In this document: in pieces, positions 8,221 to 63,415 of the stretch
Layout of the letters: each line of letters opens with the position of its first letter
How positions within the stretch are numbered: the first letter of the stretch is position 1
Virus record (IMG/VR): IMGVR_UViG_3300048591_000147
Coordinates: 124,001 to 188,000 of that record
Direction: 5' to 3' (one strand)
DNA length: 64,000 nt
The notes under the pieces: model-generated
What the model saw: the letters and a program-made list of their open reading frames with translations, nothing else
Database searches by the model: none
Told to the model about the DNA's origin: nothing
Position numbers and translations under genes: made by a program

Positions 8221-8344
8221 GACGAATCTACTTCACATTTATATTTCGATAGCATACTACATCTTGTAACATTTTTCAATTAGTTTCTATCTCCAGAAAT
8301 TTTAACGGTTACAATCATAAATATCATATAAAAGAATCCCTCAT

Positions 8345-8998
8345 ATGTTATTAAATGAAATATTGGATAGACTCACACCCCCAGAGAACGAACGCCAGAA
8401 CGGCACTGGAAGTCATAGAGATTTTGAGTATCACTGGAAGACCAAATCAGGTAATAGTGTTACATTATCTTTCTTACTTTATAAACCCAATGCCGCTGAA
8501 ATCATGTTTGAAGTTAACTATGACACCTTAGAGACTGGGCGCGAGCTTGATAAAGATATCTTGAGTTCTGTCTTTTACAAGATTGGCGAGTTTATAAAAG
8601 CCCATGATATCACTGAGGTTAAGTTTGAACCTGTGGACGATGTTAATGACTACAAAGGTTATGCGCCTCATATAGCAGTTATTAAAGATTTCGTCGAAAA
8701 CAATGCAGTACCCGCTCGTCAAAAAGGTTTGATAAGAGATCTATCGATGCTTATTTCTGACAAGAAAATAAATCAGAATTATATGAATTATATTAAACTT
8801 AGAGCATCTAGCGCTTTTGATGATGAACATCGGTTAAAGTTCGTGGCACTGCTAGACCAGTTAGAAGATATGGATCATAGTTCGATGGGTGGGCAGAATA
8901 GACGAAAGAGATTATACCTCTACGCTATTAAGAAGTACCTACCAGATTGGACTGTCAAGCAGCAAAGTTCGTACATTTACGCTTATAAAGAATACTAA
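8345..8998 (+). CDS. Putative capsid-internal protein
   Basis: TAAATA 8318; N-terminus MLLNEILD; C-terminal NRRKRLY motif. Confidence 0.6.
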   Translation: MLLNEILDRLTPPENERQNGTGSHRDFEYHWKTKSGNSVTLSFLLYKPNAAEIMFEVNYDTLETGRELDKDILSSVFYKIGEFIKAHDITEVKFEPVDDVNDYKGYAPHIAVIKDFVENNAVPARQKGLIRDLSMLISDKKINQNYMNYIKLRASSAFDDEHRLKFVALLDQLEDMDHSSMGGQNRRKRLYLYAIKKYLPDWTVKQQSSYIYAYKEY

Positions 8999-9249
8999 CT
9001 CTGCTGTTTCAAGTCCTTGAATGATTCTTCTAATATCTTTGATGCATCATCTAATACCTGTACTGATCCATCTCTATGTTCAATGGCTACCTTGACACCT
9101 GTTGCTGCCATCAATTCATTTATTTTTGCCCACATTTTCTTATTTTCTTCTTCCAAATCCATTGTGTCCATCATTTCGGCTAGTGAAATTGGTTTGCATG
9201 CATTTTTGATTATTGGTAATATGACTGGCTTATATTGTTGGTCATTCAT
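8995..9249 (-). CDS. Hypothetical protein
   Basis: Overlapping stop/start chain with neighbouring minus-strand ORFs. Confidence 0.6.
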   Translation of the reverse strand: MNDQQYKPVILPIIKNACKPISLAEMMDTMDLEEENKKMWAKINELMAATGVKVAIEHRDGSVQVLDDASKILEESFKDLKQQS

Positions 9250-9442
9250 TTATCAGTGCGTCTCTTGAGAAATAGATCGGTGTTCCATTAGCCGCCCGAA
9301 GAGTGGCTATTTCTTCTTTATACATTTTTATAATGGTGCGCGCATTGGTGTGATCCTCATCTGGATTTTCTCTAATGTGATCTTCCAGTTTTTCAATGGC
9401 GTCTAGATTCCTATTGATCCACGTTATATTAGCGTTATACAT
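9242..9442 (-). CDS. Hypothetical protein
   Basis: Coupled minus-strand ORF. Confidence 0.6.
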   Translation of the reverse strand: MYNANITWINRNLDAIEKLEDHIRENPDEDHTNARTIIKMYKEEIATLRAANGTPIYFSRDALINE

Positions 9443-9881
9443 CTACGTCACCTAGTGTGATTACCTTAGCATTAGTTACTACTGAACGGTATTCATCCCA
9501 GATGAAATATTTTATTAATTCTGGTAGTAGTGCTGCTTCACATTTTTCTTTGGTGTCAAAATATCTTATGGTTGTGCTACGAGCATCATATAGTCTTAAT
9601 CCCATTTCTGTTAGGACCAGATTGATATCTTCTATCTCGTCACCGTCATCATCCGCATCAAACTCTTTACCTTTAATCAGATGATCTACACGCGCAAAAA
9701 ACTTTATACCGATAACCTCATTAAATGAGTTTCGTGATGTTCGCTCTTTGATATAGGCTTTAACTTTTAGACCGCTTTGTTTAAATCTTTCATTAAGCTC
9801 TTCATATTTCCTAGCGGTTTGTTCATCTTGTGTAGCCTGTTCTTTCCATTCGTCGTAAGTTGGCATTTGTATGTTCTCCAT
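9435..9881 (-). CDS. Hypothetical protein
   Basis: AGGA RBS, 148 aa. Confidence 0.7.
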   Translation of the reverse strand: MENIQMPTYDEWKEQATQDEQTARKYEELNERFKQSGLKVKAYIKERTSRNSFNEVIGIKFFARVDHLIKGKEFDADDDGDEIEDINLVLTEMGLRLYDARSTTIRYFDTKEKCEAALLPELIKYFIWDEYRSVVTNAKVITLGDVDV

Positions 9882-9953
9882 TTCGTTCCTATGATATCAT
9901 GTACTCAAGATGATGTCCATGGCGTATAAATATAAAAAAGGAAAAATACTACT

Positions 9954-10505
9954 ATGAAGATATTTGATTTATTGAATGAGGCTGAAGACAATCAGGAAAG
10001 GATTCAGGAACTGTTGGCTCAACTTAAACATTTACAGGATGGTCACAAATACGCTGATCATGGTGCATACTCTCAGGATAGTCGTCGTATGCAAGACATT
10101 CATTCCGAATTGACCAAGCTTGGTTATTATGCTGATTTGCGCAATAAGAACCAGAGCGTTGAAAAGCCTAGATCATCTGATCCTAAAGAAATGCATATTA
10201 GTGTTGAAGGTAGAACTGGTGATCATAGAGAACTTATAGTTAGTTTTGATCATACTGAAAACGCAGGCGAGCATAGTGCAAATGCTGCGAATGGCATTGA
10301 TTACCCCGTTGGCGTTTATCGCTCATATGAATATGTGAGAAACCCTACTACTGGTGAGTGGGTCAAACACGCTGATCATTACGGTGGTGTTGTCGCTAGA
10401 GAAGGTGTCATTTCCGATGGCGCTAAATTGAAAGCCGTTACCCGTGTCTGGGTTAGAACTCCAAATCAATATAGCGGTAAGCTTGATTTGCTTGAGCCAG
10501 TCTGA
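9954..10505 (+). CDS. Putative capsid-internal protein
   Basis: TATAAATA 9925-9932 (perfect T4 late promoter); N-terminus MKIFDLLNEAE. Confidence 0.7.
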   Translation: MKIFDLLNEAEDNQERIQELLAQLKHLQDGHKYADHGAYSQDSRRMQDIHSELTKLGYYADLRNKNQSVEKPRSSDPKEMHISVEGRTGDHRELIVSFDHTENAGEHSANAANGIDYPVGVYRSYEYVRNPTTGEWVKHADHYGGVVAREGVISDGAKLKAVTRVWVRTPNQYSGKLDLLEPV

Positions 10506-10520
10506 ATGAAGTGAAGCGGT

Positions 10521-10847
10521 TTACGGATAAACCGCTTCTTCAAATGTGTACCGATAGATTCTCGTCTGTTTCAAGAAATCGCTGACTAATTCGTCACACG
10601 ATTCTTTACATTCCTCTAATGTAGTGTATCCGTGGTCGTAGGTTTTCTCATCTTTGAGTGTAAAGCGGAATATGCCAGTCATTGGATCTTCTACAACAAC
10701 AAAAATATGTTCACCATAATAAAGATTCAGAAAATATTTAGATGCGATATATGCGTCTAATATATCTCGTGCTTCTTGTTTGATAATAATGATTTTTATA
10801 TCCAATTTATTATCTTGGATTATTTTTTTGTTTTCATCGCTTAGCAT
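10521..10847 (-). CDS. Hypothetical protein
   Basis: Coupled minus-strand ORF. Confidence 0.6.
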   Translation of the reverse strand: MLSDENKKIIQDNKLDIKIIIIKQEARDILDAYIASKYFLNLYYGEHIFVVVEDPMTGIFRFTLKDEKTYDHGYTTLEECKESCDELVSDFLKQTRIYRYTFEEAVYP

Positions 10848-11029
10848 GCTGCAACTACCTGTTCATAGTTATTAAACAACTTTTGAAATTTTATTTCGTA
10901 CAAGTCGATCAGACCTATCAGGATGTTTTGTGGTCTGTCGCCGTCTACCACTTCCAATAGGATTCTGAGGTCGTCTATGAGTCCCCACGTTTCTAGGATT
11001 TGTTGTTCCAGTTCATATAATTTACACAT
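10841..11029 (-). CDS. Small conserved phage hypothetical protein
   Basis: LEQQILETW...LIGL..LYEIKFQKLF pattern. Confidence 0.65.
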   Translation of the reverse strand: MCKLYELEQQILETWGLIDDLRILLEVVDGDRPQNILIGLIDLYEIKFQKLFNNYEQVVAAC

Positions 11030-11243
11030 TTATTTTCATCTTTACTTTATTGATGAATGCTTTCTTATTGATTAATAACTGATTCAATTCTTTCAATAAT
11101 TCAATTTGATCTTCTGTTTTCTCTTCCGCTATATTATCGAAGAGGTCCAGAATGCCTTCTGTCAATTCTATGCTTTCAATGATATGCGGCACCAATTCTG
11201 TTTCAGTCAGTAGGTGCATCAATCTGTCTACGTTTTCACTCAT
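11022..11243 (-). CDS. Hypothetical protein
   Basis: AAGGGG RBS. Confidence 0.6.
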   Translation of the reverse strand: MSENVDRLMHLLTETELVPHIIESIELTEGILDLFDNIAEEKTEDQIELLKELNQLLINKKAFINKVKMKINV

Positions 11244-11345
11244 TTGTATTCCCCTTCATTATTTAAAACTCATTTGAGGCTTAAATGATACCACATCTGG
11301 ACCCTTTTATCCACTTCGTGATAAATATTTCTATTTGGGAAACAT

Positions 11346-12257
11346 ATGAAATTCACACAATTTTTAATCAATAATATGTTGGTCGAAGGCATCAACATGA
11401 CTCAGTACAGAAGCATCATAAATGAATGCGTCCTTGATTCTATCGATCAGATCATAGATGTTATCCCTTCTTATAAGAGAAAGATAGAGCCTGATATCAG
11501 AAATGATGCCACTCAAGGGGAATATAAGAATTTATTGAAGGCTATCAAACCGTTAATGATGAATAGTGCCAACATTATTCTTCGTTTGAATCTGACACGA
11601 CTTATTAACAGTGAAATTCCAGAGGTAGAAAAGCGTTCAAATGTATTCTTCAAGAAAATCAACGCTGACGGAACTGCGGCAGATTTTGTAATCACACTCA
11701 ACATCCGATTCATTAAAGAATTGGTTGACATATTAATCAAGACGGTGGGCAACTGGCTTGTCGTTCATAATAAAGAAAATATCAACAAATTCAAGACGTT
11801 ATTCGATATTAATAGTGATGAGATCAATCGTTTCTATGACTTCACAGGCATTCCAACGGTCTATGAGATGATTAATGTTATACTACATGAACTGGCTCAC
11901 GTTGTTCAAGATGTTAGACAGGTTCATAGGGGTGGGGAGACAGAATATCGTAGCTACTTGACCAAAAACCCGATATTCAATGACATTTTGGAGAAAATGT
12001 ATAAAGGTGCTAAGTTGACAGATGAAGAATTTCGAATTTATTTCTCCAGCCCTCAAGAGATCGCTGCTCATGCGCATAATATCGCTGCTGACGTTGTAAA
12101 GAAAATCGGTAAGTCTAAACCAACTGCTCAAGCCATCCAACAGGCAGTTAATGATTTAGTCGGAAAATTTTTTGCCGACAAGTCTGATCCGAGAATCTTA
12201 AAAGTTTATAACAGATATTTAAAACTTGTCTATCAGCAGGTAATGAATCACGTATGA
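11346..12257 (+). CDS. Zincin-like metallopeptidase, putative capsid-internal protein
   Basis: HELAH (HExxH) plus downstream YFSSPQEIAA third-ligand Glu; TAAATA 11322; N-terminus MKFTQFL...LVE. Confidence 0.7.
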   Translation: MKFTQFLINNMLVEGINMTQYRSIINECVLDSIDQIIDVIPSYKRKIEPDIRNDATQGEYKNLLKAIKPLMMNSANIILRLNLTRLINSEIPEVEKRSNVFFKKINADGTAADFVITLNIRFIKELVDILIKTVGNWLVVHNKENINKFKTLFDINSDEINRFYDFTGIPTVYEMINVILHELAHVVQDVRQVHRGGETEYRSYLTKNPIFNDILEKMYKGAKLTDEEFRIYFSSPQEIAAHAHNIAADVVKKIGKSKPTAQAIQQAVNDLVGKFFADKSDPRILKVYNRYLKLVYQQVMNHV

Positions 12258-12901
12258 AACTAGAACACGTATATAATGAAGCATTCCAAACATCTAGAAA
12301 AACTGTCATAGGTAATAATCCTCTGACGCATGGTGACCAACCTGTTCGAGATATTCCTAATAGTGATCCGCATCTAAGTACCAGAATTTCTGATAACGAT
12401 GAGATTTATAACAGATATACGAAGTTCTTATTTAACAACAAGTTAGCTCAACAGAATCCACATTTTCCTCGCATCTATGAAGAGAAAACGCTTATTAGTA
12501 CAGACAAGAATGAAACACATCCGAAGAAAGTCTTTACAATGTCAGCTACTCCTATGACATTCAGGAATTTTATTCTGTTTGAGAATAATAACGAGCAGTC
12601 ATTGGAGCGAATAAAACAAATAGCCAATATGTATTTGAACGACAGTGTTGCTTCTAACTATAATCAGGTTAAGTTAGAGAATAATAGATCGCTGGACCGC
12701 AACCGAGTTAAACAATTGGAACAAGAATTAATCTCCGACTTGTCTGATGTTGCCAATATTTCTCTCGAAACGTACAAAGAAGCATTGATGATACTTATAG
12801 ATGCGTCACATGTTGGGCGTTTAAATCTGACCGATGAGAACATAAAGGTTAGGCGCTCACCATATGGCGCGCAACTAGTTTTCGATAAGCCATTTCAATA
12901 A
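12254..12901 (+). CDS. Hypothetical protein, possibly degenerate kinase-like fold
   Basis: NPHFPRIY...NLTDENIKVR...LVFDKP resembles a kinase-like DLH..N...D pattern but lacks the catalytic residues; N-terminus MKLEHVYNEA. Confidence 0.45.
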   Translation: MKLEHVYNEAFQTSRKTVIGNNPLTHGDQPVRDIPNSDPHLSTRISDNDEIYNRYTKFLFNNKLAQQNPHFPRIYEEKTLISTDKNETHPKKVFTMSATPMTFRNFILFENNNEQSLERIKQIANMYLNDSVASNYNQVKLENNRSLDRNRVKQLEQELISDLSDVANISLETYKEALMILIDASHVGRLNLTDENIKVRRSPYGAQLVFDKPFQ

Positions 12902-12928
12902 CATAAATAAGATAAACGAAGAGTAAAT

Positions 12929-13378
12929 ATGATTAAATTTTTAGAATATTTGGCTGTGACCCAAGATGCATTAGTAGAAATGACTGCTACGCATCTATCA
13001 GGTTTACATGGATTATTGACTAGATTATTTCGAAGATATAATCTTAATTTGGTAATTACTACTCATGCATTACAGCAATTGGTTGTCAACTCTGACACAG
13101 CAAGAGCCGGAATTTCTGCTAGCGATGCTTATGAAAGTATGATTAAGTTTTGTGAGAAACAGCAACCAGCATTCGAAAAATATAAGAAAAAGAAGAAAGA
13201 GTACATAGGAATAGTGACCAATCCTGTGACCAATTTAAATATTGTGGTTTCAATTGATTATCACGATCCTCGTATCAAAGATCATCAACAACATAATATA
13301 AAGATAATCACTGCGATGCTTAAGAAAGATTTCGGATCTGACGATTATCCAGATTCAGTTAGAGTGTATGTGAATTAA
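12929..13378 (+). CDS. Putative capsid-internal protein, possible RegB/RelE-like (BECR) RNase fold
   Basis: TAAATA 12904; MIKFLEYL; ITTHALQQ...LNIVV...IITAMLKKDF. Confidence 0.45.
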   Translation: MIKFLEYLAVTQDALVEMTATHLSGLHGLLTRLFRRYNLNLVITTHALQQLVVNSDTARAGISASDAYESMIKFCEKQQPAFEKYKKKKKEYIGIVTNPVTNLNIVVSIDYHDPRIKDHQQHNIKIITAMLKKDFGSDDYPDSVRVYVN

Positions 13379-13380
13379 TT

Positions 13381-13662
13381 ATGTCCAGTAAACAATATCT
13401 CCTAATTCCACTAGGTTTATCGTTTGACAGTTTAGTTGAAGCCGCAATCGTAGCCACAAGGGTTGAAAATCGCGGCAATACAGTGCATGATACGGTCAAT
13501 GACATTGAGATAGATCGCAAGACGTTGTTAGGTATTGTACGATCTACCAGAAAACAAGAACTGGAAACGAAGAAACCCGTTCAACAAAGCTTCTTTGATG
13601 GTTACTATAAAGTATTGCCAATGTTGATCGACCCTAAGAGCCGTGCTATCATTGCATCATGA
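13381..13662 (+). CDS. Hypothetical protein
   Basis: Coupled ORF upstream of def. Confidence 0.6.
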   Translation: MSSKQYLLIPLGLSFDSLVEAAIVATRVENRGNTVHDTVNDIEIDRKTLLGIVRSTRKQELETKKPVQQSFFDGYYKVLPMLIDPKSRAIIAS

Positions 13663-14132
13663 AATACAAAATATTGACGTACCCGGACAGCAGGCTGAAG
13701 CAAAAAGCCTATCATGTATTAGAATTCAATGAAGAACTACGCACAATAGTTCGTAACATGTACGAAACCATGTATGATGCTGAAGGCGTCGGACTAGCTG
13801 CTACTCAAGTTGATATACATAAGCGCATCATAACAACATGTATTGATAAACAGGAAATAACTTTTATAAATCCTGAATTGAGTGTGGTCGGTAGCGATGT
13901 CCAAAAGTATGAAGAGGGATGTCTGTCATTCCCCTCGATGAGAGTAGAGCGATCTAGACCGACCGTTGTACAAGTGAGCTACCAAGATGTTTACGGTGCA
14001 TCACATTTCATGACGTGTGACCATTTACTGGCAGTTTGCATCCAACATGAAATTGACCATATAAACGGCATAACCTTTATAGACGGACTTTCACCGTTTA
14101 AACGTCAGAGACTGTTAGATAAATATTTTTAA
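13659..14132 (+). CDS. def: Peptide deformylase
   Basis: All three motifs present: GVGLAATQ, EGCLS, QHEIDHING. Confidence 0.95.
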   Translation: MKYKILTYPDSRLKQKAYHVLEFNEELRTIVRNMYETMYDAEGVGLAATQVDIHKRIITTCIDKQEITFINPELSVVGSDVQKYEEGCLSFPSMRVERSRPTVVQVSYQDVYGASHFMTCDHLLAVCIQHEIDHINGITFIDGLSPFKRQRLLDKYF

Positions 14133-14353
14133 CGTTTAAAAATTATATCTCTGTTTAAACTTTCGTTGCGTTGGAATGGTTGGAGTTGTACTCCAGTCAC
14201 AGCGTTTATCAATTCTATGACCTTTTGACTATCACCTTGCCGTATGAAATCTTTCATCAATAGCTTCTGCTCTTCTGATGCAGTGCGCTGAAATTTTGCG
14301 AATTCCATGAAACCCAAATTACCCGGATATACAGCTTCGTTAATATTATTCAT
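14129..14353 (-). CDS. Small late protein
   Basis: TAAATA on - strand at 14375-14380; MNNINEAVYPGNLGFME. Confidence 0.65.
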   Translation of the reverse strand: MNNINEAVYPGNLGFMEFAKFQRTASEEQKLLMKDFIRQGDSQKVIELINAVTGVQLQPFQRNESLNRDIIFKR

Positions 14354-14448
14354 CTATAATTTCTCTATTCATTTTATTTATGTTAGGTATTGCATCAACA
14401 TCGAAATTGTAGTATTATTTGTATCTCACACTATAAAAGATTATTTTT

Positions 14449-14931
14449 ATGAAAAGTCCGTATGTAAGAGAGGTTGTTGAGATCAATGGCAAGCGATATC
14501 TAGAACTTGTTGATCATTGTGGGTGGAAAGCTGGTGATAAAATCAGCTTTAGACACCAGTTGCCCGGATATACCTTAAATGTTGTTACAGAAGAGCCCGG
14601 AATCACCATCATGGCAGATCACGGTTCGACTGGTATCTGGGACTATCAGACTCGCTATATGTTGGAATACAAGGAAGTCCCAGAATTTGATGAAGAAGAT
14701 ATTAACCTCATCAAGTTGTTTATGGAATTATATGAGACTTGGCCTTGGGATTCTGATGATGCAGCAGAGATAGAGTCTGCCAAAAATGGATATGGTGTGG
14801 CGCTATTATTAAAGTCTAAACACCCAGAGATGAATATCTATTTTTATAATTATCAAAATGTAGTAAAAGAAGTACCAGCGGTATTTGACAGCAGAGCTAA
14901 AGTAGAATTAATGGAGATTAAAAAATGTTAA
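14449..14931 (+). CDS. Hypothetical protein
   Basis: 160-aa ORF coupled to the RNA ligase. Confidence 0.65.
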   Translation: MKSPYVREVVEINGKRYLELVDHCGWKAGDKISFRHQLPGYTLNVVTEEPGITIMADHGSTGIWDYQTRYMLEYKEVPEFDEEDINLIKLFMELYETWPWDSDDAAEIESAKNGYGVALLLKSKHPEMNIYFYNYQNVVKEVPAVFDSRAKVELMEIKKC

Positions 14932-16238
14932 GTGTAAAGAATGTAGGGTCGAACTACCTAGCACAGGTTGTGAAACTTGTAAATGTTAGAAAGCACACAA
15001 ATGCGGACAAGCTACAGTGCGTTACTATTCAAGGTAACAACGTTGTAACGGGTCTTGACGCAAAGGACGGTGCCGTATATGTGTATTTTCCTTTGGAATG
15101 TACTATTAATTTAGAATTTTTGGCATATTCTAATTCGTTCAGAGATAAGACCCTGAACGCTGATACTACTGTTGCCGGATTCTTTGAACAGAACGGTCGT
15201 GTGAAAGCCGTTAAGCTTCGTAATGAAAAGTCAGAAGGTTACATCGTGCCTGCTCATTCAATTGAGGATTGGTTGAAGACGAAGAACATCACCATAAACT
15301 TGGCTAATAGTATTACAGAGGAATTTGACACTATTTCTGGTATTTTGATTTGTGAAAAATACACCATCAAGTACAGCAGGCAGGCATCTCAAGGTGGTGG
15401 TAAGCAGAAGAATAAAGGCAAAGAAAAGCGTTTTGAAAGATTGATTTCAACACAGTATTCTTTAGCCGAAGACACTTCTGCACTGAAGAAGAATATCCAT
15501 AGGATCGATCCAGAGGATCAGATCACAATCAGTTACAAGATGCATGGTTGTAACTTCTCAATGGGTCGGGTGTTGTGTAATAAACCATTAAAGTGGTATG
15601 AAAAGCTGTTGAAGAAGATTGGTGTGAATGTTGTCGATACTCACTATGATACTATTTACGCTTCGCGTAATGTGATCAAAAACCAGTATGAGGAAGAGAG
15701 CACACAGCATTACTATGATGCTAATATCTGGCGCATTATTGCTGACAAATACAAGGACACTTTAAAAGACGGTATTACTATCCATGGTGAAATCGTGGGA
15801 CAGTTGCCAACTGGTTCGTGGATTCAGAGTAAGTATGACTATGGCGTTCCAGAAAAACAGGCAGAGTTGTATGTGTACAGAATGTTCTATAGATCACCAT
15901 CTGGTGATGTGTTCGAATTCAACACCGAACAGCTTATAGCTTATTGTGATAAGGTTGGTCTGAAGTATGTCCCCGTGTTTTATCAGGGTAAAGCTAAAGA
16001 CTTATTTGACATAAGTGTCTCCGAGCACTGGCACCAGACATTCCTACAGAAGTTGATTGAAAAGTATAACGAGAAAGACTGTTATATGTGTAAGAATAAG
16101 GTGCCAGAAGAAGGTATCACATTGATTTTAAACAGTAAAAATGATTTCGAAGCGTTCAAATTGAAATCATTCAGATTCCTACAACAGGAAACTGAAGAAC
16201 TGGACAAGGGTCAAGTTAATATAGAGGATGAAGTATAA
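14925..16238 (+). CDS. ATP-dependent RNA ligase, DRB0094-like (N-terminal OB domain plus Rnl2-type ligase)
   Basis: HTNADKL OB domain; motif I KMHGCN; IHGEIVG; EEGITL; FKLKS. Confidence 0.88.
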   Translation: MLSVKNVGSNYLAQVVKLVNVRKHTNADKLQCVTIQGNNVVTGLDAKDGAVYVYFPLECTINLEFLAYSNSFRDKTLNADTTVAGFFEQNGRVKAVKLRNEKSEGYIVPAHSIEDWLKTKNITINLANSITEEFDTISGILICEKYTIKYSRQASQGGGKQKNKGKEKRFERLISTQYSLAEDTSALKKNIHRIDPEDQITISYKMHGCNFSMGRVLCNKPLKWYEKLLKKIGVNVVDTHYDTIYASRNVIKNQYEEESTQHYYDANIWRIIADKYKDTLKDGITIHGEIVGQLPTGSWIQSKYDYGVPEKQAELYVYRMFYRSPSGDVFEFNTEQLIAYCDKVGLKYVPVFYQGKAKDLFDISVSEHWHQTFLQKLIEKYNEKDCYMCKNKVPEEGITLILNSKNDFEAFKLKSFRFLQQETEELDKGQVNIEDEV

Positions 16239-16240
16239 TC

Positions 16241-16266
16241 AAACGGGGCGGGAAACCGCCCCGTTT
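16241..16266 (+). terminator. Terminator hairpin
   Basis: AAACGGGGCGG-GAAA-CCGCCCCGTTT. Confidence 0.75.
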
Positions 16267-16325
16267 GACATGTGCGGTACGGATAATGTAGTATGCTTAA
16301 TCTACCTAAACGGATGAAAAATAAT

Positions 16326-17561
16326 ATGAGTGACAAAAGTACGACCAATTATATGTTTTCTGGTGATAGAGATGGACATATTCCCAGAAAAATATTCTCA
16401 AATGCATTTGGCGTAGACTACACAGACATCATGGAAATCGATTGTATCGATAATATTTCACTGGAAGATGTTGAGGGTATTATAGAAAAATTGCGACCTG
16501 TCATGGGCGACCACAAAAAGTATCGTCAAGCACATTTGAGTGTGCCTGCCGGTGATTCATCATTAGATACAGGTGACGATGATGACGATGATGACGATGA
16601 TTGTAAAAAGCATACATGTTTAACTGACAAGGTGTCCCTAGATGTCGGCTCTATTCTATATCTATTTGAAAGTGCGCACTTATTGATATACAATCAATAT
16701 TATGCTGGTGCGAAGTATTCGTCATTCAAGATTTTCTCCGATAATACTGTTGATCAAAGCATATTAAAGCTGTTCGTGGAGGCTGCTTGCCTGCTGGGTG
16801 AACAGAATACTGCCGCAATGCCAGAGGATAAGCGCCATGCTTCATTCTCCATGATCGTGAAAGGTCAGGAAGGTTATGAGACATCATCATTTAGATATGA
16901 TTATAAGAAGTTCAACAATTTACGAGTTGAGACTCATTACAACAGTGATTTTGAACCAATCAACGAAAAGATTATTAAGCACATAAACGAAAAGAAGTCT
17001 TCTGGCATCGTCATACTCCATGGCATTCCCGGTACTGGTAAGACCACATATTTAAGATACTTAATATCTAAATGTAAAAAGAACATTATTTACTTACCAC
17101 CAGACATGACAAATTATTTGTCCGATCCCGGCTTTATTAGTTTCATGAAACAACAAGTGAATTGCGTATTCATTGTTGAAGACGCTGAAGAAATTCTCAA
17201 AAAGCGCGGAGAGACTAATAACTCTGGAGCAGTGTCAAATATCCTGAATGTGTCTGACGGTATTCTAGCTGATGTTTTGCATTTCAATTTCATCTTCACG
17301 ATCAATTGTGAAATCGATCAGATTGATAGTGCGCTTAAGCGTCCCGGTAGATTGGTTGCTGAGTACAAGTTTTCGGAACTAGGTTATAATAAAACATCTG
17401 AATTAATATTTGAACTATATCCTGACGCGGCAGAAGAATTGATTAAGCACATTCCAAAGAATGGTCTTACGCTTGCTCAAATATATAATCTTAATGAGAC
17501 TGCATATCTGTACACTCCTAAAAAGAATGGTATTGGATTTACAGCTAACATAGGAGGATAA
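16326..17561 (+). CDS. AAA+ ATPase
   Basis: Walker A GIPGTGKT, Walker B FIVEDAE, ILNVSDG, ALKRPGR arginine finger; start estimated. Confidence 0.9.
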   Translation: MSDKSTTNYMFSGDRDGHIPRKIFSNAFGVDYTDIMEIDCIDNISLEDVEGIIEKLRPVMGDHKKYRQAHLSVPAGDSSLDTGDDDDDDDDDCKKHTCLTDKVSLDVGSILYLFESAHLLIYNQYYAGAKYSSFKIFSDNTVDQSILKLFVEAACLLGEQNTAAMPEDKRHASFSMIVKGQEGYETSSFRYDYKKFNNLRVETHYNSDFEPINEKIIKHINEKKSSGIVILHGIPGTGKTTYLRYLISKCKKNIIYLPPDMTNYLSDPGFISFMKQQVNCVFIVEDAEEILKKRGETNNSGAVSNILNVSDGILADVLHFNFIFTINCEIDQIDSALKRPGRLVAEYKFSELGYNKTSELIFELYPDAAEELIKHIPKNGLTLAQIYNLNETAYLYTPKKNGIGFTANIGG

Positions 17562-17565
17562 TGTA

Positions 17566-18072
17566 ATGCATCAGAATGTAGAAGCTGGCGACGATAAATT
17601 CCAAAATTATTGTATGGCGTGGGGAGTTGATGGTATATCATTTAATCAATTTAAATTCATATGCACTAGTAAATGCTGGAACGACTATACGAAGTCTTCC
17701 AAATTAATGGAAACCGTATGCGATGTATTGAAAATAACGGATTTACTTGACAATTTCACAGTGTCACCGTCTTTTAATGACACACTACCATCAACATTGA
17801 CATACTCAGTTAATTTTGATGATGGGCGCATGTTATATCTAGGTATGGATATCGCCCACGATATTAACACTGGCATTTATAATGTGTACATAACAGAGTA
17901 TGATGCCAGATTGTGTGAATCTAAGGATAGATCTGCATACCATTACAGTAATATATTTGGTCCGTTCTTCGATGATATGCCGCTAAACAATCAAGAGTTG
18001 TATGAGAAGACTCGAATGTGGCATACTGGTATTTCGAAACATTTAAGGAATATATCAAATGTTAGTAACTGA
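17566..18072 (+). CDS. Hypothetical protein
   Basis: GGAGG RBS, 168 aa. Confidence 0.65.
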   Translation: MHQNVEAGDDKFQNYCMAWGVDGISFNQFKFICTSKCWNDYTKSSKLMETVCDVLKITDLLDNFTVSPSFNDTLPSTLTYSVNFDDGRMLYLGMDIAHDINTGIYNVYITEYDARLCESKDRSAYHYSNIFGPFFDDMPLNNQELYEKTRMWHTGISKHLRNISNVSN

Positions 18073-18541
18073 CCTGTTTTCATATGCGAATATACATTTT
18101 GAACGTTACCGAGACTCTGCGTATGGTGAATTACACAACTACTATAACACGGACGTAGGGAAGATTCATTTAATGTTGAATTCTGTAGATAATAAACTTC
18201 AATTAGCACAAACCCTCGCGGATAAGTATGAAGATTATATCGATGTTATTAAACTGGCTATCGACTGTTCACTGAAGTTATTCACTGATGCCAAGATAGC
18301 TTTTAGGTTATATGACATCAACTCATTTCTGGATTCGTCCGGTATGATCGTGTTAGGATGGAATATTGATAACAAAGAGTACAACTTTGTAATCGTAGGC
18401 AATGTTAATTATGGTCCGTATTATAAAATTGGTGCCAATGATGGCGAGCATGTGGTTCTTGGTTCAATAGCTAAAGAATTCGAATTCGATAATCCTTTAC
18501 CCGTTTGGTTTATCGATGCTATGAAAACGGGATATTGCTAA
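18059..18541 (+). CDS. Hypothetical protein
   Basis: Coupled ORF with AAGGA RBS. Confidence 0.65.
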   Translation: MLVTDLFSYANIHFERYRDSAYGELHNYYNTDVGKIHLMLNSVDNKLQLAQTLADKYEDYIDVIKLAIDCSLKLFTDAKIAFRLYDINSFLDSSGMIVLGWNIDNKEYNFVIVGNVNYGPYYKIGANDGEHVVLGSIAKEFEFDNPLPVWFIDAMKTGYC

Positions 18542-18552
18542 GGAAATAAAAA

Positions 18553-18867
18553 ATGTCTGAAGTCTTTTGTGCTAGATTAGCTAGCGGTGAACATATAATT
18601 GGGTTGATTAAATCAGCAGATAGTGAACACAATACTATCAATTTAGAAAATGCATTGTTGGTAAATATCGTACCAACGGATAATGGTTATGGCGTGCAAT
18701 TTATGCCTGTCTCCCCATTGGCAAGACCGCCACTGGACAAAGGTTCTAGTGTTGTTTTGAACCTATCTCAGGTGCTGTACGGTATGGAATATGATGAAAA
18801 TCTAGTGAATAACTATAAGCAAAATGTATCAAGTATAATCACTGGCAGTCTGTTTACGGGGCGATAA
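18553..18867 (+). CDS. Sm-like fold protein (T4-like phage family)
   Basis: RLASGEHIIG...LENALLV...GVQFMP pattern. Confidence 0.55.
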   Translation: MSEVFCARLASGEHIIGLIKSADSEHNTINLENALLVNIVPTDNGYGVQFMPVSPLARPPLDKGSSVVLNLSQVLYGMEYDENLVNNYKQNVSSIITGSLFTGR

Positions 18868-19144
18868 TGCCAGTGCTAACATATAACTGATGCGACATTT
18901 CATTCATTGCGTCTTTTATGGCTTTCGTGTCCCAATCATTCGGGTGTTGATCATACATCAAGTATGTCGCACCCGTTTGTTTTTGTTGAGCCAGCCAAAA
19001 ATTCACTCCGCACAAATACAGTTTGTTATCGATATTTGTCGGTGCCTTTGTAACCCGATTCTTAAACAGAATGAACTCTATTATCTCCCCTGACATGTTT
19101 GATGGGGTTTTTATTATCTTTACTTGTTGAATTTCTTGTTCCAT
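18854..19144 (-). CDS. Hypothetical protein
   Basis: 96-aa ORF. Confidence 0.55.
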   Translation of the reverse strand: MEQEIQQVKIIKTPSNMSGEIIEFILFKNRVTKAPTNIDNKLYLCGVNFWLAQQKQTGATYLMYDQHPNDWDTKAIKDAMNEMSHQLYVSTGIIAP

Positions 19145-19355
19145 ATTTACGCCTTAGATATGAGTGGACTACTAGGAATTGATAAGATGGTAAGAATTTT
19201 ACCACATAATCTTTGATATCATTATTATAGCAAAACGAATGATGTCGTTCGTAGAGTATTGCAATATTGCTATTTATGTCCTGCAATATCAGTACATCTG
19301 CTGGGGGTTCGCCTTTTTCTTGATCGATAACACTATGCCACCACTCTTCTATCAT
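19062..19355 (-). CDS. Hypothetical protein
   Basis: 97-aa ORF overlapping the next gene. Confidence 0.45.
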   Translation of the reverse strand: MIEEWWHSVIDQEKGEPPADVLILQDINSNIAILYERHHSFCYNNDIKDYVVKFLPSYQFLVVHSYLRRKYGTRNSTSKDNKNPIKHVRGDNRVHSV

Positions 19356-19399
19356 TTCCCATCCATAAATATAGTTACAAATATATTTATGGATGGGAA

Positions 19400-19993
19400 A
19401 TGCATTTACTAAAAAATATTCTTTTAATAGAAACTCAGAAAAACACTGAGAGAGAAGTCAGAACCAGTATTGAGCTAATCAATAAGGTATATAATGATTG
19501 GCGCCTTACAGGTAGACGAAAAAATGCTATTGATTTAGTATCATCTTCTACTAACAGAATTTCTGCTATATCACCCGCTATATTGCCGCATCTTCATGAT
19601 GCCGGTGTAATGAAATTGGCATTTATTCTTATGCGATGCATGGACTTGGCGTCTTGGAAAGACGTAAGCTCTAAATCTAGAACCTATAAAAGATTATTTC
19701 CATTGATTGATAGATTACAACATTTGGATATGCAGACTGGGACGGGCGGTACATTGCGTCAAGTAATAATGACCAGACTTAGTGCTTCTCTTTCTTATAA
19801 CGATGAAGATAAATTATCTGTGTTTGTTGCATACGAACCAACCATTACCAAATCATATCTTAACTACTTGTTTTTAAACGAATTACCAAAGAAAACGGTG
19901 AAGATGCATGCACTACCCCTACCAGAATCTTTCGATACTCTGGTAGGGGTTTTAGAAATTAATCACAAAAAGGCTAAATCAAATCTCAAGTAA
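19400..19993 (+). CDS. Putative late/capsid-internal protein
   Basis: TAAATA 19366; N-terminus MHLLKNILLIE. Confidence 0.6.
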   Translation: MHLLKNILLIETQKNTEREVRTSIELINKVYNDWRLTGRRKNAIDLVSSSTNRISAISPAILPHLHDAGVMKLAFILMRCMDLASWKDVSSKSRTYKRLFPLIDRLQHLDMQTGTGGTLRQVIMTRLSASLSYNDEDKLSVFVAYEPTITKSYLNYLFLNELPKKTVKMHALPLPESFDTLVGVLEINHKKAKSNLK

Positions 19994-20761: not shown

Positions 20762-20807
20762 AATGATTCCTATAAATATTGTATATTAGCAGAGAACATA
20801 TTATATC

Positions 20808-21536: not shown

Positions 21537-21539
21537 AGA

Positions 21540-51500: not shown

Positions 51501-51941
51501 ATGGATATAAGAAAAATTTCACTTTTATTAGCGGAGGCAGTTGATGCTTGGCGCATAGTACCAAGAATAGTATTGGTGTCGTATGCTTGGCTTGTCTACC
51601 AGCTATATTTATGGTACACAAAAATACCTACATATGTTCAAGAACAATGTAATTCTGAGGTATTGCAGACATTAGTTGCCGCTGGAATAGCGCTTAACGA
51701 CGCTAAGAATCTGGCGTGTAGTGTTATGGACGTCGTAGGCGGTCCCACAGCCGCTCAGTCAGCGTTTGTGACCACCATCATAGGTTTATCTACTGGCATC
51801 TTCGGATTGTACACAGCGACTGGTAGACGCTGGGATGGAAATACCACTCCACAGCAGCCTATTAATAATGTGACGATAGTACAACCACCAGTCAATCCAC
51901 AACCAGCCGATGTGGTAGTCGATAATGGTCCACAACCTTAA
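51501..51941 (+). CDS. Late membrane protein (possible holin)
   Basis: DAWRIVPR plus two TM segments; TAAATA 51489. Confidence 0.5.
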   Translation: MDIRKISLLLAEAVDAWRIVPRIVLVSYAWLVYQLYLWYTKIPTYVQEQCNSEVLQTLVAAGIALNDAKNLACSVMDVVGGPTAAQSAFVTTIIGLSTGIFGLYTATGRRWDGNTTPQQPINNVTIVQPPVNPQPADVVVDNGPQP

Positions 51942-58344: not shown

Positions 58345-58650
58345 TTACTTACCTTTTAAATAATCATTGAAACGTTGTAGAACTTTTGTTCCGGTTTGGG
58401 TTTTAGTTCTTGCCGCCTTTCTAGCGGTCTGCTTTTTGCGAAGTCTAGCCGTAGCTTTGCCACGTCTAACCTTTCCGGGATCTTTTTTAATTCCACACTT
58501 ATCAGGTGTCGAAACTAATCTACCAGCTTTGTCACCATAAGTACATCTATACTCACGTTTAAGTTTCCCGCCAACCCTTTTTAACTGGCGGGAAACTCTT
58601 TTACTTTCTTCTATGTAAAACAAATCTAAGAATGTTTCTTCTTCGTTCAT
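58345..58650 (-). CDS. Small basic head-associated protein
   Basis: Acidic leader ending in EE followed by a K/R-rich body (YRCT.G.K.GR). Confidence 0.55.
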   Translation of the reverse strand: MNEEETFLDLFYIEESKRVSRQLKRVGGKLKREYRCTYGDKAGRLVSTPDKCGIKKDPGKVRRGKATARLRKKQTARKAARTKTQTGTKVLQRFNDYLKGK

Positions 58651-60116
58651 CGCATCGAACCTAATCTACCAACCTGCTGCTGATTGTTCTGCTGATTAAT
58701 CTGCTGCTGATTATTTTGCTGCTGATTATTTTGCTGCTGATTACTCTGTTGATTATTTTGTTGCTGATTGTTCTGCTGCTGATTGTTTTGTTGGTTTTGA
58801 CCTTGTTGCATTCTATTGGTCTTAGCCTGTAAAGCAACTCGCTGTAAGCGGATGCGCAATTCTTTCATCGCCAAGTTCTTCTCCTGTTGTGGGAGTGAAG
58901 ACATTCTGATGGCTTGCATTGCTGCCATTACCGATCTAGTCGTATCACCAGTCTCAACTTCGAATAACATGAAATTAATGTGCTTACTTTTAGTTTCTAC
59001 CGACTCCATTGCCATACCGTTTGTCTGCTTAACTCTATGTTTTGCCAAATCTGATATGCGTCTAGCTTCTTTCTCTTTCTTCTTCTGACTTTCTACTGAC
59101 TGCTCCATGGCCAATAATTCGGCTTGTTGTTCCACTGATGCTGAAGCCGCTTTTGCAGTATATTCAGCCTGTAACGCGCGTGCTTTTTCGCTTTCTGCTT
59201 CAGCTTGTGCTTTCTTAGCGTCAGCATCGGCTGTCAGCATCGCTAGAATACTTTGCAGTAATCCTTCGACACCACCGCTGCTAGGTTCAGGTTCGGAAAA
59301 ATCTGATACCGATTCATCATCACCTAAATCTCCGTCTGCACCCATTTCACCACCCATTTCATCGCCACCAGCATCCATTCCTAGACCGCTAGCGTCACCA
59401 CCCATTTCATCACCCATACCCATCTCACCAGTTTGATCTGGCTCAATATTATTGTCTAAATCTACTTCACCACCAACTGCGTCACCGTCATTGCTCATTT
59501 TAACTTTGTCAGCGTTGTATATTGCATTGGCAGGGATCTGAGGGAACTCTACATCTACTATCTCAAATTCATTTTTCAATTTAAACAGCAATTCCGCCAT
59601 GCTAGTTGATTTCTGCTTGCCTAGTTCGTTGTTTAATTGCGTAGCATTTGACAACTCTGATGATAATCTTTCCTCGAATTCTGCTGCTGCATCACGCCTA
59701 ACAGTGACCTTCATGATATTGCCAGCATCATCTTCAACACCATATGTTATGGTATCTTCAGTATTTCTACCTTCCATGTCTTTAAGGCGAGAGACAACAT
59801 CATCCATATCAAATGCTTCAGCTAATCCCATATATTTTTTCATTCTGTATAGGATTGAATTCTTCTGTTCTAATCGCTTTCTAGCTGCTAAAACTCTTTC
59901 TCTAGCTTCTGGATTACTCATTAGTTTAGCTAAGTCTTCTTTCTTCTGCTGCTGTTGTAGTTTTGCCTTGCTTCTCCAATCATTTTCAACAGAGCTAGCA
60001 TTGATATCGACTCTACGTCTAATATTTCCATCGGTTGATGGATTAGCTGCTACTGAACCTGCGCCGATTGCGCCCCCGGCAGCCATTTCTTTAATTATTT
60101 CTTTCAATAATGACAT
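58647..60116 (-). CDS. Putative prohead core/internal head protein with acidic G/D/E/M region and Q/N-rich tail
   Basis: TAAATA on - at 60140-60145; MSLLKEIIKEM; GDEMG repeats; QQQNN repeats. Confidence 0.65.
   Translation of the reverse strand: MSLLKEIIKEMAAGGAIGAGSVAANPSTDGNIRRRVDINASSVENDWRSKAKLQQQQKKEDLAKLMSNPEARERVLAARKRLEQKNSILYRMKKYMGLAEAFDMDDVVSRLKDMEGRNTEDTITYGVEDDAGNIMKVTVRRDAAAEFEERLSSELSNATQLNNELGKQKSTSMAELLFKLKNEFEIVDVEFPQIPANAIYNADKVKMSNDGDAVGGEVDLDNNIEPDQTGEMGMGDEMGGDASGLGMDAGGDEMGGEMGADGDLGDDESVSDFSEPEPSSGGVEGLLQSILAMLTADADAKKAQAEAESEKARALQAEYTAKAASASVEQQAELLAMEQSVESQKKKEKEARRISDLAKHRVKQTNGMAMESVETKSKHINFMLFEVETGDTTRSVMAAMQAIRMSSLPQQEKNLAMKELRIRLQRVALQAKTNRMQQGQNQQNNQQQNNQQQNNQQSNQQQNNQQQNNQQQINQQNNQQQVGRLGSMR
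58673..58808 (-). repeat. 15-nt-period repeat encoding (QQQNN)n
   Basis: TGCTGCTGATTATTT-type units on +. Confidence 0.85.
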
Positions 60117-60142
60117 GTATAAAAACCCTTTTTATGATATAT

Positions 60143-60589
60143 TTATCGTATTATATTTTTTTCTACCGCAAATCTATATTCGATGTTTTTACCTACACAC
60201 CATCGCATTGCGGCTTCAGCTTTCAGCATATTGATCATGTATGTATAATTTTCTACTATTGCTGTCTTCTTGTTTCTAGCTTTACTTTTTCTAATCAACT
60301 TTTCCGGCTTTATTTCTATAATAACTTTCTTTAAGGTTTTATCCTTATCGATGTACTCGACATACAAGTCTGGGTAATACTTAGACGGTTTAATACTACC
60401 GTCTGGCATAGGTTTCATATAATCTATCGCGATCTCTTCTGACGACCAACCTAGTACAAATGGGTTGCTATCCAAAAACACAAAAGAATTTAATTCTAGT
60501 GATGACCTATACTCAATATTATCTAAATCTCCAAGATATTTGTTGGGATTCTTAGGTTTAAATTTTCCTTCATATGGTGATCTACGCAT
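60143..60589 (-). CDS. Head completion nuclease (T4 gp4-like, TnsA fold)
   Basis: GKFKPKNP.KY.G...YRSS.E, WSSEEI.I.Y, YYPD, IEIKP. Confidence 0.9.
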   Translation of the reverse strand: MRRSPYEGKFKPKNPNKYLGDLDNIEYRSSLELNSFVFLDSNPFVLGWSSEEIAIDYMKPMPDGSIKPSKYYPDLYVEYIDKDKTLKKVIIEIKPEKLIRKSKARNKKTAIVENYTYMINMLKAEAAMRWCVGKNIEYRFAVEKNIIR

Positions 60590-61871: not shown

Positions 61872-61904
61872 AAAATACTCCGTATAAGGTATTTATTACA
61901 AAAA

Positions 61905-61931
61905 CAAATGCCAGCTTTCGCTGGCATTTGT
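61905..61931 (-). terminator. Terminator after the tail tube gene
   Basis: ACAAATGCCAGC-TTTC-GCTGGCATTTGT with a T-tract on -. Confidence 0.85.
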
Positions 61932-61952
61932 TCATAACCTATTACCTTTTAC

Positions 61953-62561
61953 TTAACACCCGGATCGTAGACCAGAGTGACCACCTGTAGCACTCTTATC
62001 GATACCGCAGATTAACTGACGCGCGTGATCGTATCTAAAAGTTACAGAAATTTTAACAGCTTCGTTTGCAGCATAATCCACATCACCATAATCGATGTTC
62101 TGGATGAATACACCTTCATAAGCCCATGATTCAACTGGAGTTGTATCACCATCCAACATTTCACAAATCATAGCAAATTTATAGTCTTCACCGCCTTGCG
62201 CAGATGCCATTACACCACTTGGAGAACCAAACGGCGCTATGATAGTTTGCTGGCGCTCTAACTGATCTTGGAATATCTGTGAAACTCTACCACCAAGATC
62301 TGATTCAAATGACCACACTGCTGCTGACCAGTTATGCTTACCAGCAATCCAAGCTCTCGAATTATAACGATGTAGTTCGATTTCTTCGAATTCTAATTTA
62401 GGTCTGTCACCCTGTACGGCTTGAAGAGTTAAAATTTCACTCATATTACCATCACCCTGACCCCCTATGTTTAGGAATCGAACTTTCCACTTATATTTTG
62501 TTTGTGGGTGTATAATACCACCCGCTGATGGTATTACGCCGAAATCCGCAAGTATTGCCAT
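61953..62561 (-). CDS. Tail tube protein (gp19-like)
   Basis: RPKLEFEEI...IAGKHNW, W.YEG.FIQNIDYG..DY, VTFRYDHA; TAAATA on - at 62596-62601; next to the sheath. Confidence 0.85.
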   Translation of the reverse strand: MAILADFGVIPSAGGIIHPQTKYKWKVRFLNIGGQGDGNMSEILTLQAVQGDRPKLEFEEIELHRYNSRAWIAGKHNWSAAVWSFESDLGGRVSQIFQDQLERQQTIIAPFGSPSGVMASAQGGEDYKFAMICEMLDGDTTPVESWAYEGVFIQNIDYGDVDYAANEAVKISVTFRYDHARQLICGIDKSATGGHSGLRSGC

Positions 62562-62674
62562 TTGTTTAACTCCTTAAAGTCATATTAGTTATAAGTATTT
62601 ATTAATTTGACCAAATAATTCAAACTTTTTTGTCATGTAATGAATAAATATAATAAACATGGACTTAACAAGAT

Positions 62675-63415
62675 ATGAGATTCAGTAAATTTCTAACAGA
62701 GAAGGAAGAGGCGAATAATTTGTCTGCAAACGTGCTTATTATAATGCACCGGATATTCGCCGCAGTAGAACAAACACACATAGAGAAAAGTGACGGCATG
62801 TGTGAGTTCAATATTGGTCAAGCCATAAAAGATAAAGATCTAAAATCGCTGAACATCGCCATAAAGAAAGGTCCAGCACCATCTGCAAAGTTTGCTGTAA
62901 AAAGTGACGGAGATGACTATTATATTGTTATTGAGACTCCGAAATACGAAGAAAATCTAGAAAGGGAAGATATAATCGCGATTTTGGAAAGCGCTTCATT
63001 AAAAACTCCGCTACATGATGCAATAACACACTTCTTAAAATATGCAAGAGATGAATTTGATGAGAAGAACGTACCATCACACCACGAACAGAAAACAGAC
63101 GCTAACCAGAATGTTGAGCAAAAATATGATGCGCTAATTAAGACCGTAAAGAGTAGATTAGAAGATCATCATTCAGCGGCTGCCGAAATAGACAGACAAT
63201 CGAAACAGACGTCTAATGCCTTTAAGCAAGACAGTTTCAAAATGGCGTTGGAAAAATTGAAAGAAGAAACTCATGGAAAGGATTTTAAAGGATTCTTATC
63301 AATAGTTAATAAGTTACCAGAAGGTGGATTCATTAAAGAGTTGGAAGGTGACCTTAAGAAAAAGATCTTGAGTAGATTAGAAGACTACTACGAGCATTAT
63401 TTAAACAAGCAATAA
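62675..63415 (+). CDS. Putative capsid-internal protein
   Basis: TAAATA 62645; N-terminus MRFSKFLTEKEE. Confidence 0.6.
   Translation: MRFSKFLTEKEEANNLSANVLIIMHRIFAAVEQTHIEKSDGMCEFNIGQAIKDKDLKSLNIAIKKGPAPSAKFAVKSDGDDYYIVIETPKYEENLEREDIIAILESASLKTPLHDAITHFLKYARDEFDEKNVPSHHEQKTDANQNVEQKYDALIKTVKSRLEDHHSAAAEIDRQSKQTSNAFKQDSFKMALEKLKEETHGKDFKGFLSIVNKLPEGGFIKELEGDLKKKILSRLEDYYEHYLNKQ

Follow-up and report, generated by a model that had tools for sequence, protein, structure and literature searches.

The 64-kb window analyzed here (positions 124,001-188,000 of the 314,956-bp virus record IMGVR_UViG_3300048591_000147) encodes nine open reading frames (ORFs), named below by their start positions in the window, that begin with short leaders resembling the capsid-targeting sequence (CTS) of phage T4. 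The phage probably loads many uncharacterised proteins into its capsid, and about twenty leader-bearing late genes were counted genome-wide, nine of them in the window. In the reading that we favour, with modest confidence, these late genes would be transcribed from A-TAAATA promoters of the gp55 type, and their products would bear an N-terminal propeptide of 5-17 residues working like the T4 CTS. The hydrophobic face of the leader would dock the protein onto the scaffolding core during prohead assembly, and a gp21-type protease would cut after the Glu of L/I/V-x-Glu, freeing the mature protein within the head. The six genes from 8345 to 14353 would be accessory cargo, probably ejected with the DNA and including one HExxH protein; 19400, 60116 and 62675 would more likely be internal or core components of the head. 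We infer late timing, packaging, cleavage and ejection, as well as any effector or anti-defence role, from the sequence alone.

The virus record carries direct terminal repeats and was rated complete. Pieces of the window gave no nucleotide-level match to phage records by megablast, and the nearest named phages, the Xanthomonas phages Xoo-sp13 and XacN1 and two Stenotrophomonas phages, shared about 41-43% identity in DNA polymerase. Therefore, the phage is an uncultured member, low in guanine plus cytosine (GC, 37%), of the XacN1-like branch of T4-related jumbo phages. The window encodes a T4-type DNA polymerase, NrdA, an RNA ligase (RnlA) and glycosyltransferases. Genes were called genome-wide by our own simple heuristic based on codon usage and ribosome-binding sites, which gave 513 genes of at least 45 amino acids (aa).

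Leaders, maturation protease and putative late promoters

The nine ORFs had been proposed as a family by a sequence-only reading of the window. All were present at the starts and with the N-termini it had given, two of them on the minus strand (14129-14353 and 58647-60116), and all-against-all BLASTP agreed with its description of them as unrelated, none being paralogous to another. That they lie opposite in strand to their neighbours was true for 8345, 9954, 14353, 19400 and 62675, but not for 60116, which runs with its neighbours. In the following list the arrow marks the predicted cleavage site, late denotes predicted timing, and brackets give the basis of the assignment.

8345..8998, plus strand: late ORF, 217 aa, short leader MLLNE↓I, variable hot-spot gene (family alignment)
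9954..10505, plus strand: late ORF, 183 aa, leader MKIFDLLNE↓A, variable hot-spot gene (strict pattern)
11346..12257, plus strand: late ORF, 303 aa, leader MKFTQFLINNMLVE↓G (35 homologues)
12254..12901, plus strand: ORF, 215 aa, translationally coupled to 11346, leader MKLEHVYNE↓A, no promoter motif of its own (strict pattern)
12929..13378, plus strand: late ORF, 149 aa, leader MIKFLEYLAVTQDALVE↓M (orthologue in the metagenomic relative L011)
14129..14353, minus strand: late ORF, 74 aa, very short leader MNNINE↓A, weakest of the nine (orthologues)
19400..19993, plus strand: late ORF, 197 aa, leader MHLLKNILLIE↓T (clade-conserved)
58647..60116, minus strand: late ORF, 489 aa, leader MSLLKEIIKE↓M (clade-conserved, strict pattern)
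62675..63415, plus strand: late ORF, 246 aa, leader MRFSKFLTE↓K (clade-conserved, strict pattern)

The leaders of eight of the nine ORFs end in L/I/V-x-E at residue 5-17; ORF 12254 has Y-N-E. In the three unrelated families 8345, 11346 and 19400, the leader-ending Glu was found in 44/44 sequences and L/I/V two residues before it likewise in 44/44, and leader and Glu were conserved among homologues otherwise only 25-50% identical. Within the 8345 family, M1 and the leader Glu were invariant in 8/8 sequences, with L or I at P3; its homologues displayed longer leaders such as MKTFTQFLIE↓K, the window copy being shortened. For 11346, with 35 homologues, an alignment of 18 sequences (24-73% identity) left M1 and E14 as the sole invariant N-terminal columns, P3 being L/I/V in 18/18, and the leaders of this family include MRFSQFLIE↓R, MKLTEILLE↓S and MRIKDIIDE↓A. 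The 19400 family likewise displayed invariant M1 and E11 and L/I/V at P3 in 18/18 (for example MELFKQILLHE↓S).

The same reading had suggested a check for enrichment of such N-termini, and the outcome depended on the pattern. A loose pattern ([LIVMFY]xE ending at residue 5-15) was not enriched, occurring in 31% of late and 24% of non-late genes (p = 0.09), nor was its variant with three or more hydrophobic residues. A strict pattern was fixed beforehand from T4 ipII/ipIII and gp24, as hydrophobic-x-x-hydrophobic-hydrophobic-x-Glu with the Glu at residue 8-12. It matched 7/89 late genes against 1.13 expected from the interior rate (binomial p = 1.5e-4) and 8/424 non-late genes against 5.4 expected, and its end position peaked at residues 9-10. 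When residues 2-12 of each late protein were shuffled, with composition preserved, 1.39 matches were expected (P = 0.0008). Among the named ORFs, 9954, 12254, 60116 and 62675 match the strict pattern; the other five miss its spacing and fit only L/I/V-x-E, which their homologues conserve. The finding was replicated in the cultured relative Xoo-sp13, where 4/66 late genes matched and 0.73 would be expected (p = 0.006).

A score based on nearest neighbours, for which the training set consisted of T4 leaders and those leaders of other genomes that have no homologue here, reached at least 10 in 10/89 late and 9/424 non-late genes (p = 4e-4; interior control 3/513), and its top twenty included 60116, 62675, 9954, 11346 and 12929. 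Unsupervised pairwise similarity of N-termini gave a modest signal only, partly from homing-endonuclease paralogues. A stricter regular expression, written after seeing the data (p = 5e-5), was set aside as post hoc in favour of the strict pattern and the nearest-neighbour score. The strict pattern captures only part of the leader set, and all of these tests share one late-gene definition. The plus-strand ORF at window 51501-51941, located among minus-strand genes, starts MDIRKISLLLAE↓A and also fits the strict pattern; TAAATA lies only 6 nt from its called ATG, so that the start or the promoter assignment is doubtful.

The parallel drawn by the sequence-only reading with the T4 leader and its prohead protease gained support from the rest of the genome. 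In T4, cleavage by gp21 follows L/I-x-E, the ten N-terminal residues of IPIII are enough for packaging, and residues 4 and 7 of the leader serve targeting while 8 and 10 serve processing (PMC9026906). The T4 proteins themselves start MKTYQEFIAE↓A (ipII and ipIII), MKTFKEF...ITE↓A (ipI) and MAKINELLRE (gp24), as read from their sequences. A prohead protease of the gp21 family (Peptidase_S77) is encoded at genome 224606-225232 (PF03420 match at 224666-225085, 86 bits, E = 3e-25), and a gp23-family major capsid protein and a gp24-like paralogue are encoded elsewhere in the genome. The stretch GGLTE↓TAAAG of the capsid protein aligns with the T4 gp23 maturation site FLTE↓AEIGG; therefore, a protease specificity close to that of T4 is plausible. 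The N-terminus of the protease (QLLIEE) resembles that of T4 gp21 (QLLIET).

The set, put at about ten ORFs by the earlier reading, extends well beyond the window and includes neighbours of the protease and capsid genes. Three of the seven strict-pattern matches sit among head genes. The first (143 aa, MRYLKLFLE↓H) is encoded where T4 has gp67, between the portal and protease genes, and resembles gp67 in its long acidic tail; a second (122 aa, MKIQHLVNE↓S) directly follows the protease gene, and the third (211 aa, MKRFIQYLQE↓APLPEDWD) directly follows the capsid gene. Orthologues of such head-adjacent matches in Xoo-sp13 start MKIQSILNE↓D and MPMTFSQFLTE↓APLPDDWD. By position and composition, the 143-aa protein, a 128-aa protein from the same portal-protease interval and, ahead of the capsid gene, a 312-aa coiled-coil-like ORF are candidates for the scaffolding core (analogues of gp22, gp67 and gp68); none of them gave a profile match.

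Three further genes in the rest of the genome touch on this subject. A second, shorter prohead-protease paralogue (140 aa, 27% identical) is located at genome 278884-279306, and its N-terminus MKHTTYNVILKE↓AG fits the leader pattern. A 74-aa ORF at genome 310386-310610 matches only positions 8-32 of the Gp23 capsid profile, close to its N-terminal end, and has CSVQPM, similar to GVQPM of the capsid protein, of which it may be a fragment or a mimic. At genome 2910-3179, an 89-aa late gene with the leader MKLIDLIQE↓H and an excisionase/MerR-like helix-turn-helix could encode a packaged DNA-binding protein; its Xoo-sp13 orthologue differs at the N-terminus.

Eight of the nine ORFs are preceded by TAAATA at 18-28 nt from the start, in agreement with the earlier reading:

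8318..8323, plus strand: TAAATA, 21 nt before the ATG at 8345
9927..9932, plus strand: TAAATA, 21 nt before the ATG at 9954
11322..11327, plus strand: TAAATA, 18 nt before the ATG at 11346
12904..12909, plus strand: TAAATA, 19 nt before the ATG at 12929
14375..14380, minus strand: TAAATA, 21 nt before the start at 14353
19366..19371, plus strand: TAAATA, 28 nt before the ATG at 19400
60140..60145, minus strand: TAAATA, 23 nt before the start at 60116
62645..62650, plus strand: TAAATA, 24 nt before the ATG at 62675

The exception, ORF 12254, overlaps the stop codon of 11346. Genome-wide motif-to-start distances confirmed the positional enrichment: TAAATA was located 15-35 nt upstream of 88/513 genes and its reverse complement TATTTA of about 8 in the same bins, an enrichment of about 10-fold. 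The preceding base was A in 73/89 and the base before that was unconstrained, so that the consensus is A-TAAATA; the first T of the T4 octamer TATAAATA, on which the earlier reading had drawn, is not conserved. Behind the motif are, among others, the portal and tail-sheath genes, the gene of a 3106-aa protein of baseplate size and numerous structural-block genes. On its minus strand, genome 217386-217976 encodes a gp55-like late sigma factor (phrog_234 'late sigma transcription factor', E = 2e-25). Xoo-sp13 (41% GC) gave the same TAAATA peak over its whole genome, with 54 against about 6. Because of the motif, the sigma factor and the gene content, we take the TAAATA sites to be putative T4-type gp55-dependent late promoters. 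A scan for sigma-70 promoters and terminators in window 8000-21600 found no enrichment over shuffles and was uninformative on early units.

Some genes behind TAAATA are of other kinds. Paralogues with N-termini like those of GIY-YIG-type homing endonucleases, each behind TAAATA, are located outside the window at genome 23158-23778, 33438-34313, 47537-48187 and 96024-96953; T4 seg and mob genes are likewise often found behind late promoters. At window 20808-21536, a 242-aa gene has a TAAATA promoter and no leader, and its homologue in the metagenomic relative L013 (73% identical) has a weak Peptidase_C1 match. XacN1 has been reported to encode a C1 peptidase.

Variable hot spot and clade-conserved genes

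The earlier reading had regarded the whole family as a probable arsenal of injected proteins. The variable set turned out to be the cluster 8345-14353; 19400, 60116 and 62675 are conserved in the clade, two of them in the structural block, and are more likely head-core proteins. The six variable genes sit between the gene of a CCA-adding enzyme (7132-8220) and the deformylase and RNA-ligase genes (13659-16238), and local BLASTP against the Xoo-sp13 gene set detected no homologue of 8345, 9954, 11346, 12254, 12929 or 14353. Two metagenomic relatives share the synteny of this hot spot, L011 at about 70% and L013 at about 40-55% amino-acid identity, and carry partly different TAAATA genes with leaders at the site. 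The leaders found there include MQTFIRYLIE (on a 590-aa protein), MQFLKFLLE and MFLRNLLLE, and a second HExxH paralogue starts MKLTEILLE. A 534-aa protein starting MKSFKHYLVN...PE↓G carries an Amidoligase_2 domain. T-even internal-protein loci encode diverse proteins that have only the targeting sequence in common and vary between related phages (PMC3012670); by analogy, the turnover of the hot spot matches that behaviour.

The leader of 9954 is kept in four close homologues and in L011. The mature part of the 11346 product displayed HExxH..Q, EYRSY and SPQEI, all invariant in 18/18 sequences. Its AlphaFold2 (AF2) model had a predicted local distance difference test score (pLDDT) of 83, with residues 1-12 below 50 and unpacked, the sole long low-confidence N-terminal stretch. 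With regard to a possible zincin or SprT-like metallopeptidase, one source labelled a homologue 'SprT family'; a PDB profile search gave only E = 0.3, and the best relevant VIA match, SPRTN 6mdx (Z = 4.3), was within noise. With this model Foldseek gave nothing at or below E = 1e-3, Pfam was empty, and tblastn against phages and an IMG/VR pattern scan for 11346 found nothing.

Homologues of 12254 in L011 and L013 start MKLLDIKE↓S, MLINEIFD and MKLYEIFD, the last two being paralogues with Asp for Glu (L011:8757-9491 and L013:7073-7732, respectively). In T4 a leader with Asp for Glu allows targeting and blocks cleavage (PMC9026906); therefore, by analogy, some cargo may be packaged uncut. The L011 orthologue of 12929 starts MIRFLNYLIE↓MTTTHL, with the Glu-Met junction conserved. 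Orthologues of 14353 start MNEINE↓A (L011) and MILE↓A (L013).

Genes for RNA maintenance surround the hot spot (window 7132-8220, 13659-14132, 14925-16238, 22067-23656 and 24220-24393), comprising an enzyme of the CCA-adding/poly(A)-polymerase family, a peptide deformylase, an Rnl-type RNA ligase, a Ro60/TROVE-like RNA-binding protein, tRNA-Gly(GCC) and tRNA-Ser(CGA). Window 1-8000, part of a block at genome about 65-130 kb, has a GC content of 41-50% against about 37% elsewhere, with dense small plus-strand ORFs, and the drop to 37% near 8 kb coincides exactly with the start of the hot spot. This block could be an early region or an acquired one.

Orthologues of 19400, 60116 and 62675 were all detected in Xoo-sp13 by local BLASTP, all behind TAAATA there too. 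The 19400 orthologue starts MELFKQLLLHE↓S, and the AF2 model of 19400 (pLDDT 90.5) had an unnamed viral homologue, A0A292GIZ6, presumably the XacN1 orthologue, as its sole fold match. The 60116 protein is acidic, with a coiled-coil middle and a Gln/Asn-rich tail. Its gene lies directly downstream of an ORF (60143-60589) that holds the position of the head-completion gene of XacN1 and Xoo-sp13. Its orthologues XacN1 ORF347 and Xoosp13_317 start M(T/N)KQKLNE↓TA.GGA, K-L-N-E↓T-A-x-G-G-A being kept. In all relatives 62675 is divergent to an adjoining 'structural protein' gene, and XacN1 ORF352 is its positional counterpart. The Xoo-sp13 orthologue of 62675 starts MRFTQFLVE↓D, with 31% identity overall and 6/9 in the leader. 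These results suggest that 60116, 62675 and perhaps 19400 are more likely conserved internal or core head proteins.

For none of the nine proteins did Pfam or PHROG return a significant match; a single GP57 match for 62675 stayed below threshold (17.9 bits, cut-off 27), and Atlas searches for 19400 and 8345 gave no usable lead. Dynamin-stalk and helical fold matches (Z about 6) of the 11346 and 19400 models were rejected as being within the stated noise for helical proteins. The predicted mature proteins range from 8 to 53 kDa and in isoelectric point (pI) from 4.9 to 9.8; thus, the leader-bearing proteins are not uniformly small basic proteins like T4 IPI-III.

Window 31444-49576 holds a large glycosyltransferase-like cluster, some of its genes behind TAAATA, which includes a 574-aa phrog_24687 glycosyltransferase and a weak match to the T4 beta-glucosyl-HMC-alpha-glucosyltransferase-like family. 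It could indicate glycosylation of DNA or virion.

Alternative readings of the leaders

Several points weigh against the leaders being cleaved targeting sequences on injected proteins. L/I/V-x-E near an N-terminus is frequent by chance, and the strict pattern fits only 4/9 of the named ORFs. The gene calls are heuristic, so some starts may be wrong. The leaders of some homologues end in Asp (see above), and the leader in the 19400 model starts a long helix (pLDDT 76) and is not a free tail. No mature domain resembled a known anti-defence protein in profile and fold searches, and the available parts of the XacN1 and RsoM2USA virion lists, which comprise figures or major bands only, do not name orthologues. 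In codons 2-11 the GC content was lowest in leader genes (0.23), followed by other late genes (0.29) and non-late genes (0.35), compared with 0.40 in gene interiors; therefore, the leader resemblance could partly reflect selection on translation initiation.

Three other explanations were ranked. The best placed, although we consider it unlikely, is that the leaders are true prohead-targeting propeptides that are cleaved, on proteins that are core, scaffold or inner-head parts (degraded, expelled or retained) and not injected effectors. The conservation of 19400, 60116 and 62675 across the clade fits this explanation, as does the location of 60116 and 62675 within the structural block, next to the head-completion-position ORF and the 'structural protein' gene, and the acidic, coiled-coil, low-complexity 60116 resembles scaffold or core proteins. 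Moreover, the protein that resembles gp67 and holds its genomic position bears the leader, and T4 degrades its gp67. However, the genes 8345-14353 vary between relatives and are absent from Xoo-sp13, a pattern rarely seen in assembly parts and characteristic of T-even internal-protein loci (PMC3012670); one hot-spot protein has the enzyme-like HExxH core, and a cargo protein of a relative has the amidoligase domain.

Less probable again is that the N-terminal resemblance is a by-product of expression. Highly expressed late genes would then prefer Lys as the second residue and an AT-rich start without structure (codons for Lys, Asn, Ile, Phe, Leu, Tyr and Glu), which would produce M-K-hydrophobic...E strings that play no part in targeting, on ordinary late proteins outside the virion. 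The codon composition given above agrees with this, and so does the loose motif, which is not enriched in late genes. AT-rich first codons do not, however, explain the enrichment of the strict pattern, because the composition-preserving shuffle gives only 1.4 matches against 7 observed. The Glu with its L/I/V two residues before is also invariant in the 44/44 homologues, the motif ends preferentially at residues 9-10, and the leader of 62675 is better conserved than the rest of the protein.

The idea that the leader addresses another destination or partner (as a membrane-binding amphipathic helix, as a tag recognised by the second protease-like paralogue, or as a signal for degradation or for a chaperone) can draw on that diverged paralogue at genome 278884-279306 and on the short amphipathic helices predicted for the leaders in the 11346 and 19400 models, but it appears very improbable, as the motif agrees with gp21 specificity and with the aligned cleavage site of the capsid protein, neighbours of the canonical protease gene also encode leader-bearing proteins, and inspection by eye, with no predictor run, found no transmembrane or signal-peptide features in them.

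We thus keep to the reading of late, leader-targeted and cleaved head cargo with an accessory subset that would be ejected. A bolder extension, which we put forward only tentatively, is that in the XacN1-like clade one portable tag of 9-14 residues and a private late promoter load 15-20 capsid proteins delivered with the DNA. The cargo would include the HExxH hydrolase-like family and an amidoligase, and the interval between the CCA-adding-enzyme and RNA-ligase genes would be a cassette site where new effectors for anti-defence or takeover turn over quickly.

Should the leaders act as they do in T4, the combination of a late promoter with a hydrophobic leader ending in L/I/V-x-Glu would form a rule by which the packaged and injected proteome of an uncultured jumbo-phage clade could be read straight from the genome. 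The families of 19400, 8345 and 9954 and the HExxH family of 11346 would then be candidates for early roles in counter-defence or host takeover, and the T4 capsid-targeting mechanism would predate the T-even phages by far and extend well beyond them. The tag could also be used to package proteins in other phage chassis, in the way the T4 CTS is already used.

Comparison with known phage systems

A literature search, incomplete in coverage, found no description of such leaders in XacN1-like or Rak2-like phages. The accessory anti-restriction Dar proteins of phage P1 enter the head as it is formed and, once injected, protect the entering DNA (PMC12810830). They depend on a hierarchy of partner proteins and not on a shared short cleavable tag, and they have no sequence relation to the present set.

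In the jumbo phages phiKZ, 201phi2-1 and SPN3US, a prohead protease related to that of T4 cleaves many head proteins after Glu, and these proteins are delivered to the host; SPN3US-like giant phages encode a diverged protease paralogue, as does the present genome (PMC5694885). Their sites are A/S-x-E and their propeptides mostly exceed 100 residues, and they have no T4-type late promoters, whereas the leaders here are of T4 length and end in L/I/V-x-E. The Rak2-like phages CBB and GAP32 display the same heptamer, ATAAATA, upstream of structural genes and encode a gp55-like sigma factor, as here. In the portion of that study available to us, the motif is tied to structural genes only, and no class of leader-bearing cargo genes is described (PMC5259590).

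The closest likeness is to T4. IPI, IPII, IPIII and Alt carry, like the present proteins, a short N-terminal leader that is hydrophobic at about positions 4 and 7-8 and ends in L/I-x-Glu. Both sets come with a gp21-family protease, consist of unrelated mature domains sharing only the leader, and are encoded at loci that vary between relatives. T4 has about 4-6 leader-bearing genes, and about 20 are found here. The present set belongs to a distant 315-kb relative, is known from sequence alone, and has leaders of 5-17 residues. Its genes each have their own proximal A-TAAATA promoter, whereas the T4 ip genes have no proximal TATAAATA, and the mature proteins range from acidic to basic (pI 4.9-9.8), unlike the small basic IPI-III of T4. 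New here are the clade, a repertoire as large as about twenty genes across the genome, the private promoter of each gene and the variable cassette site.

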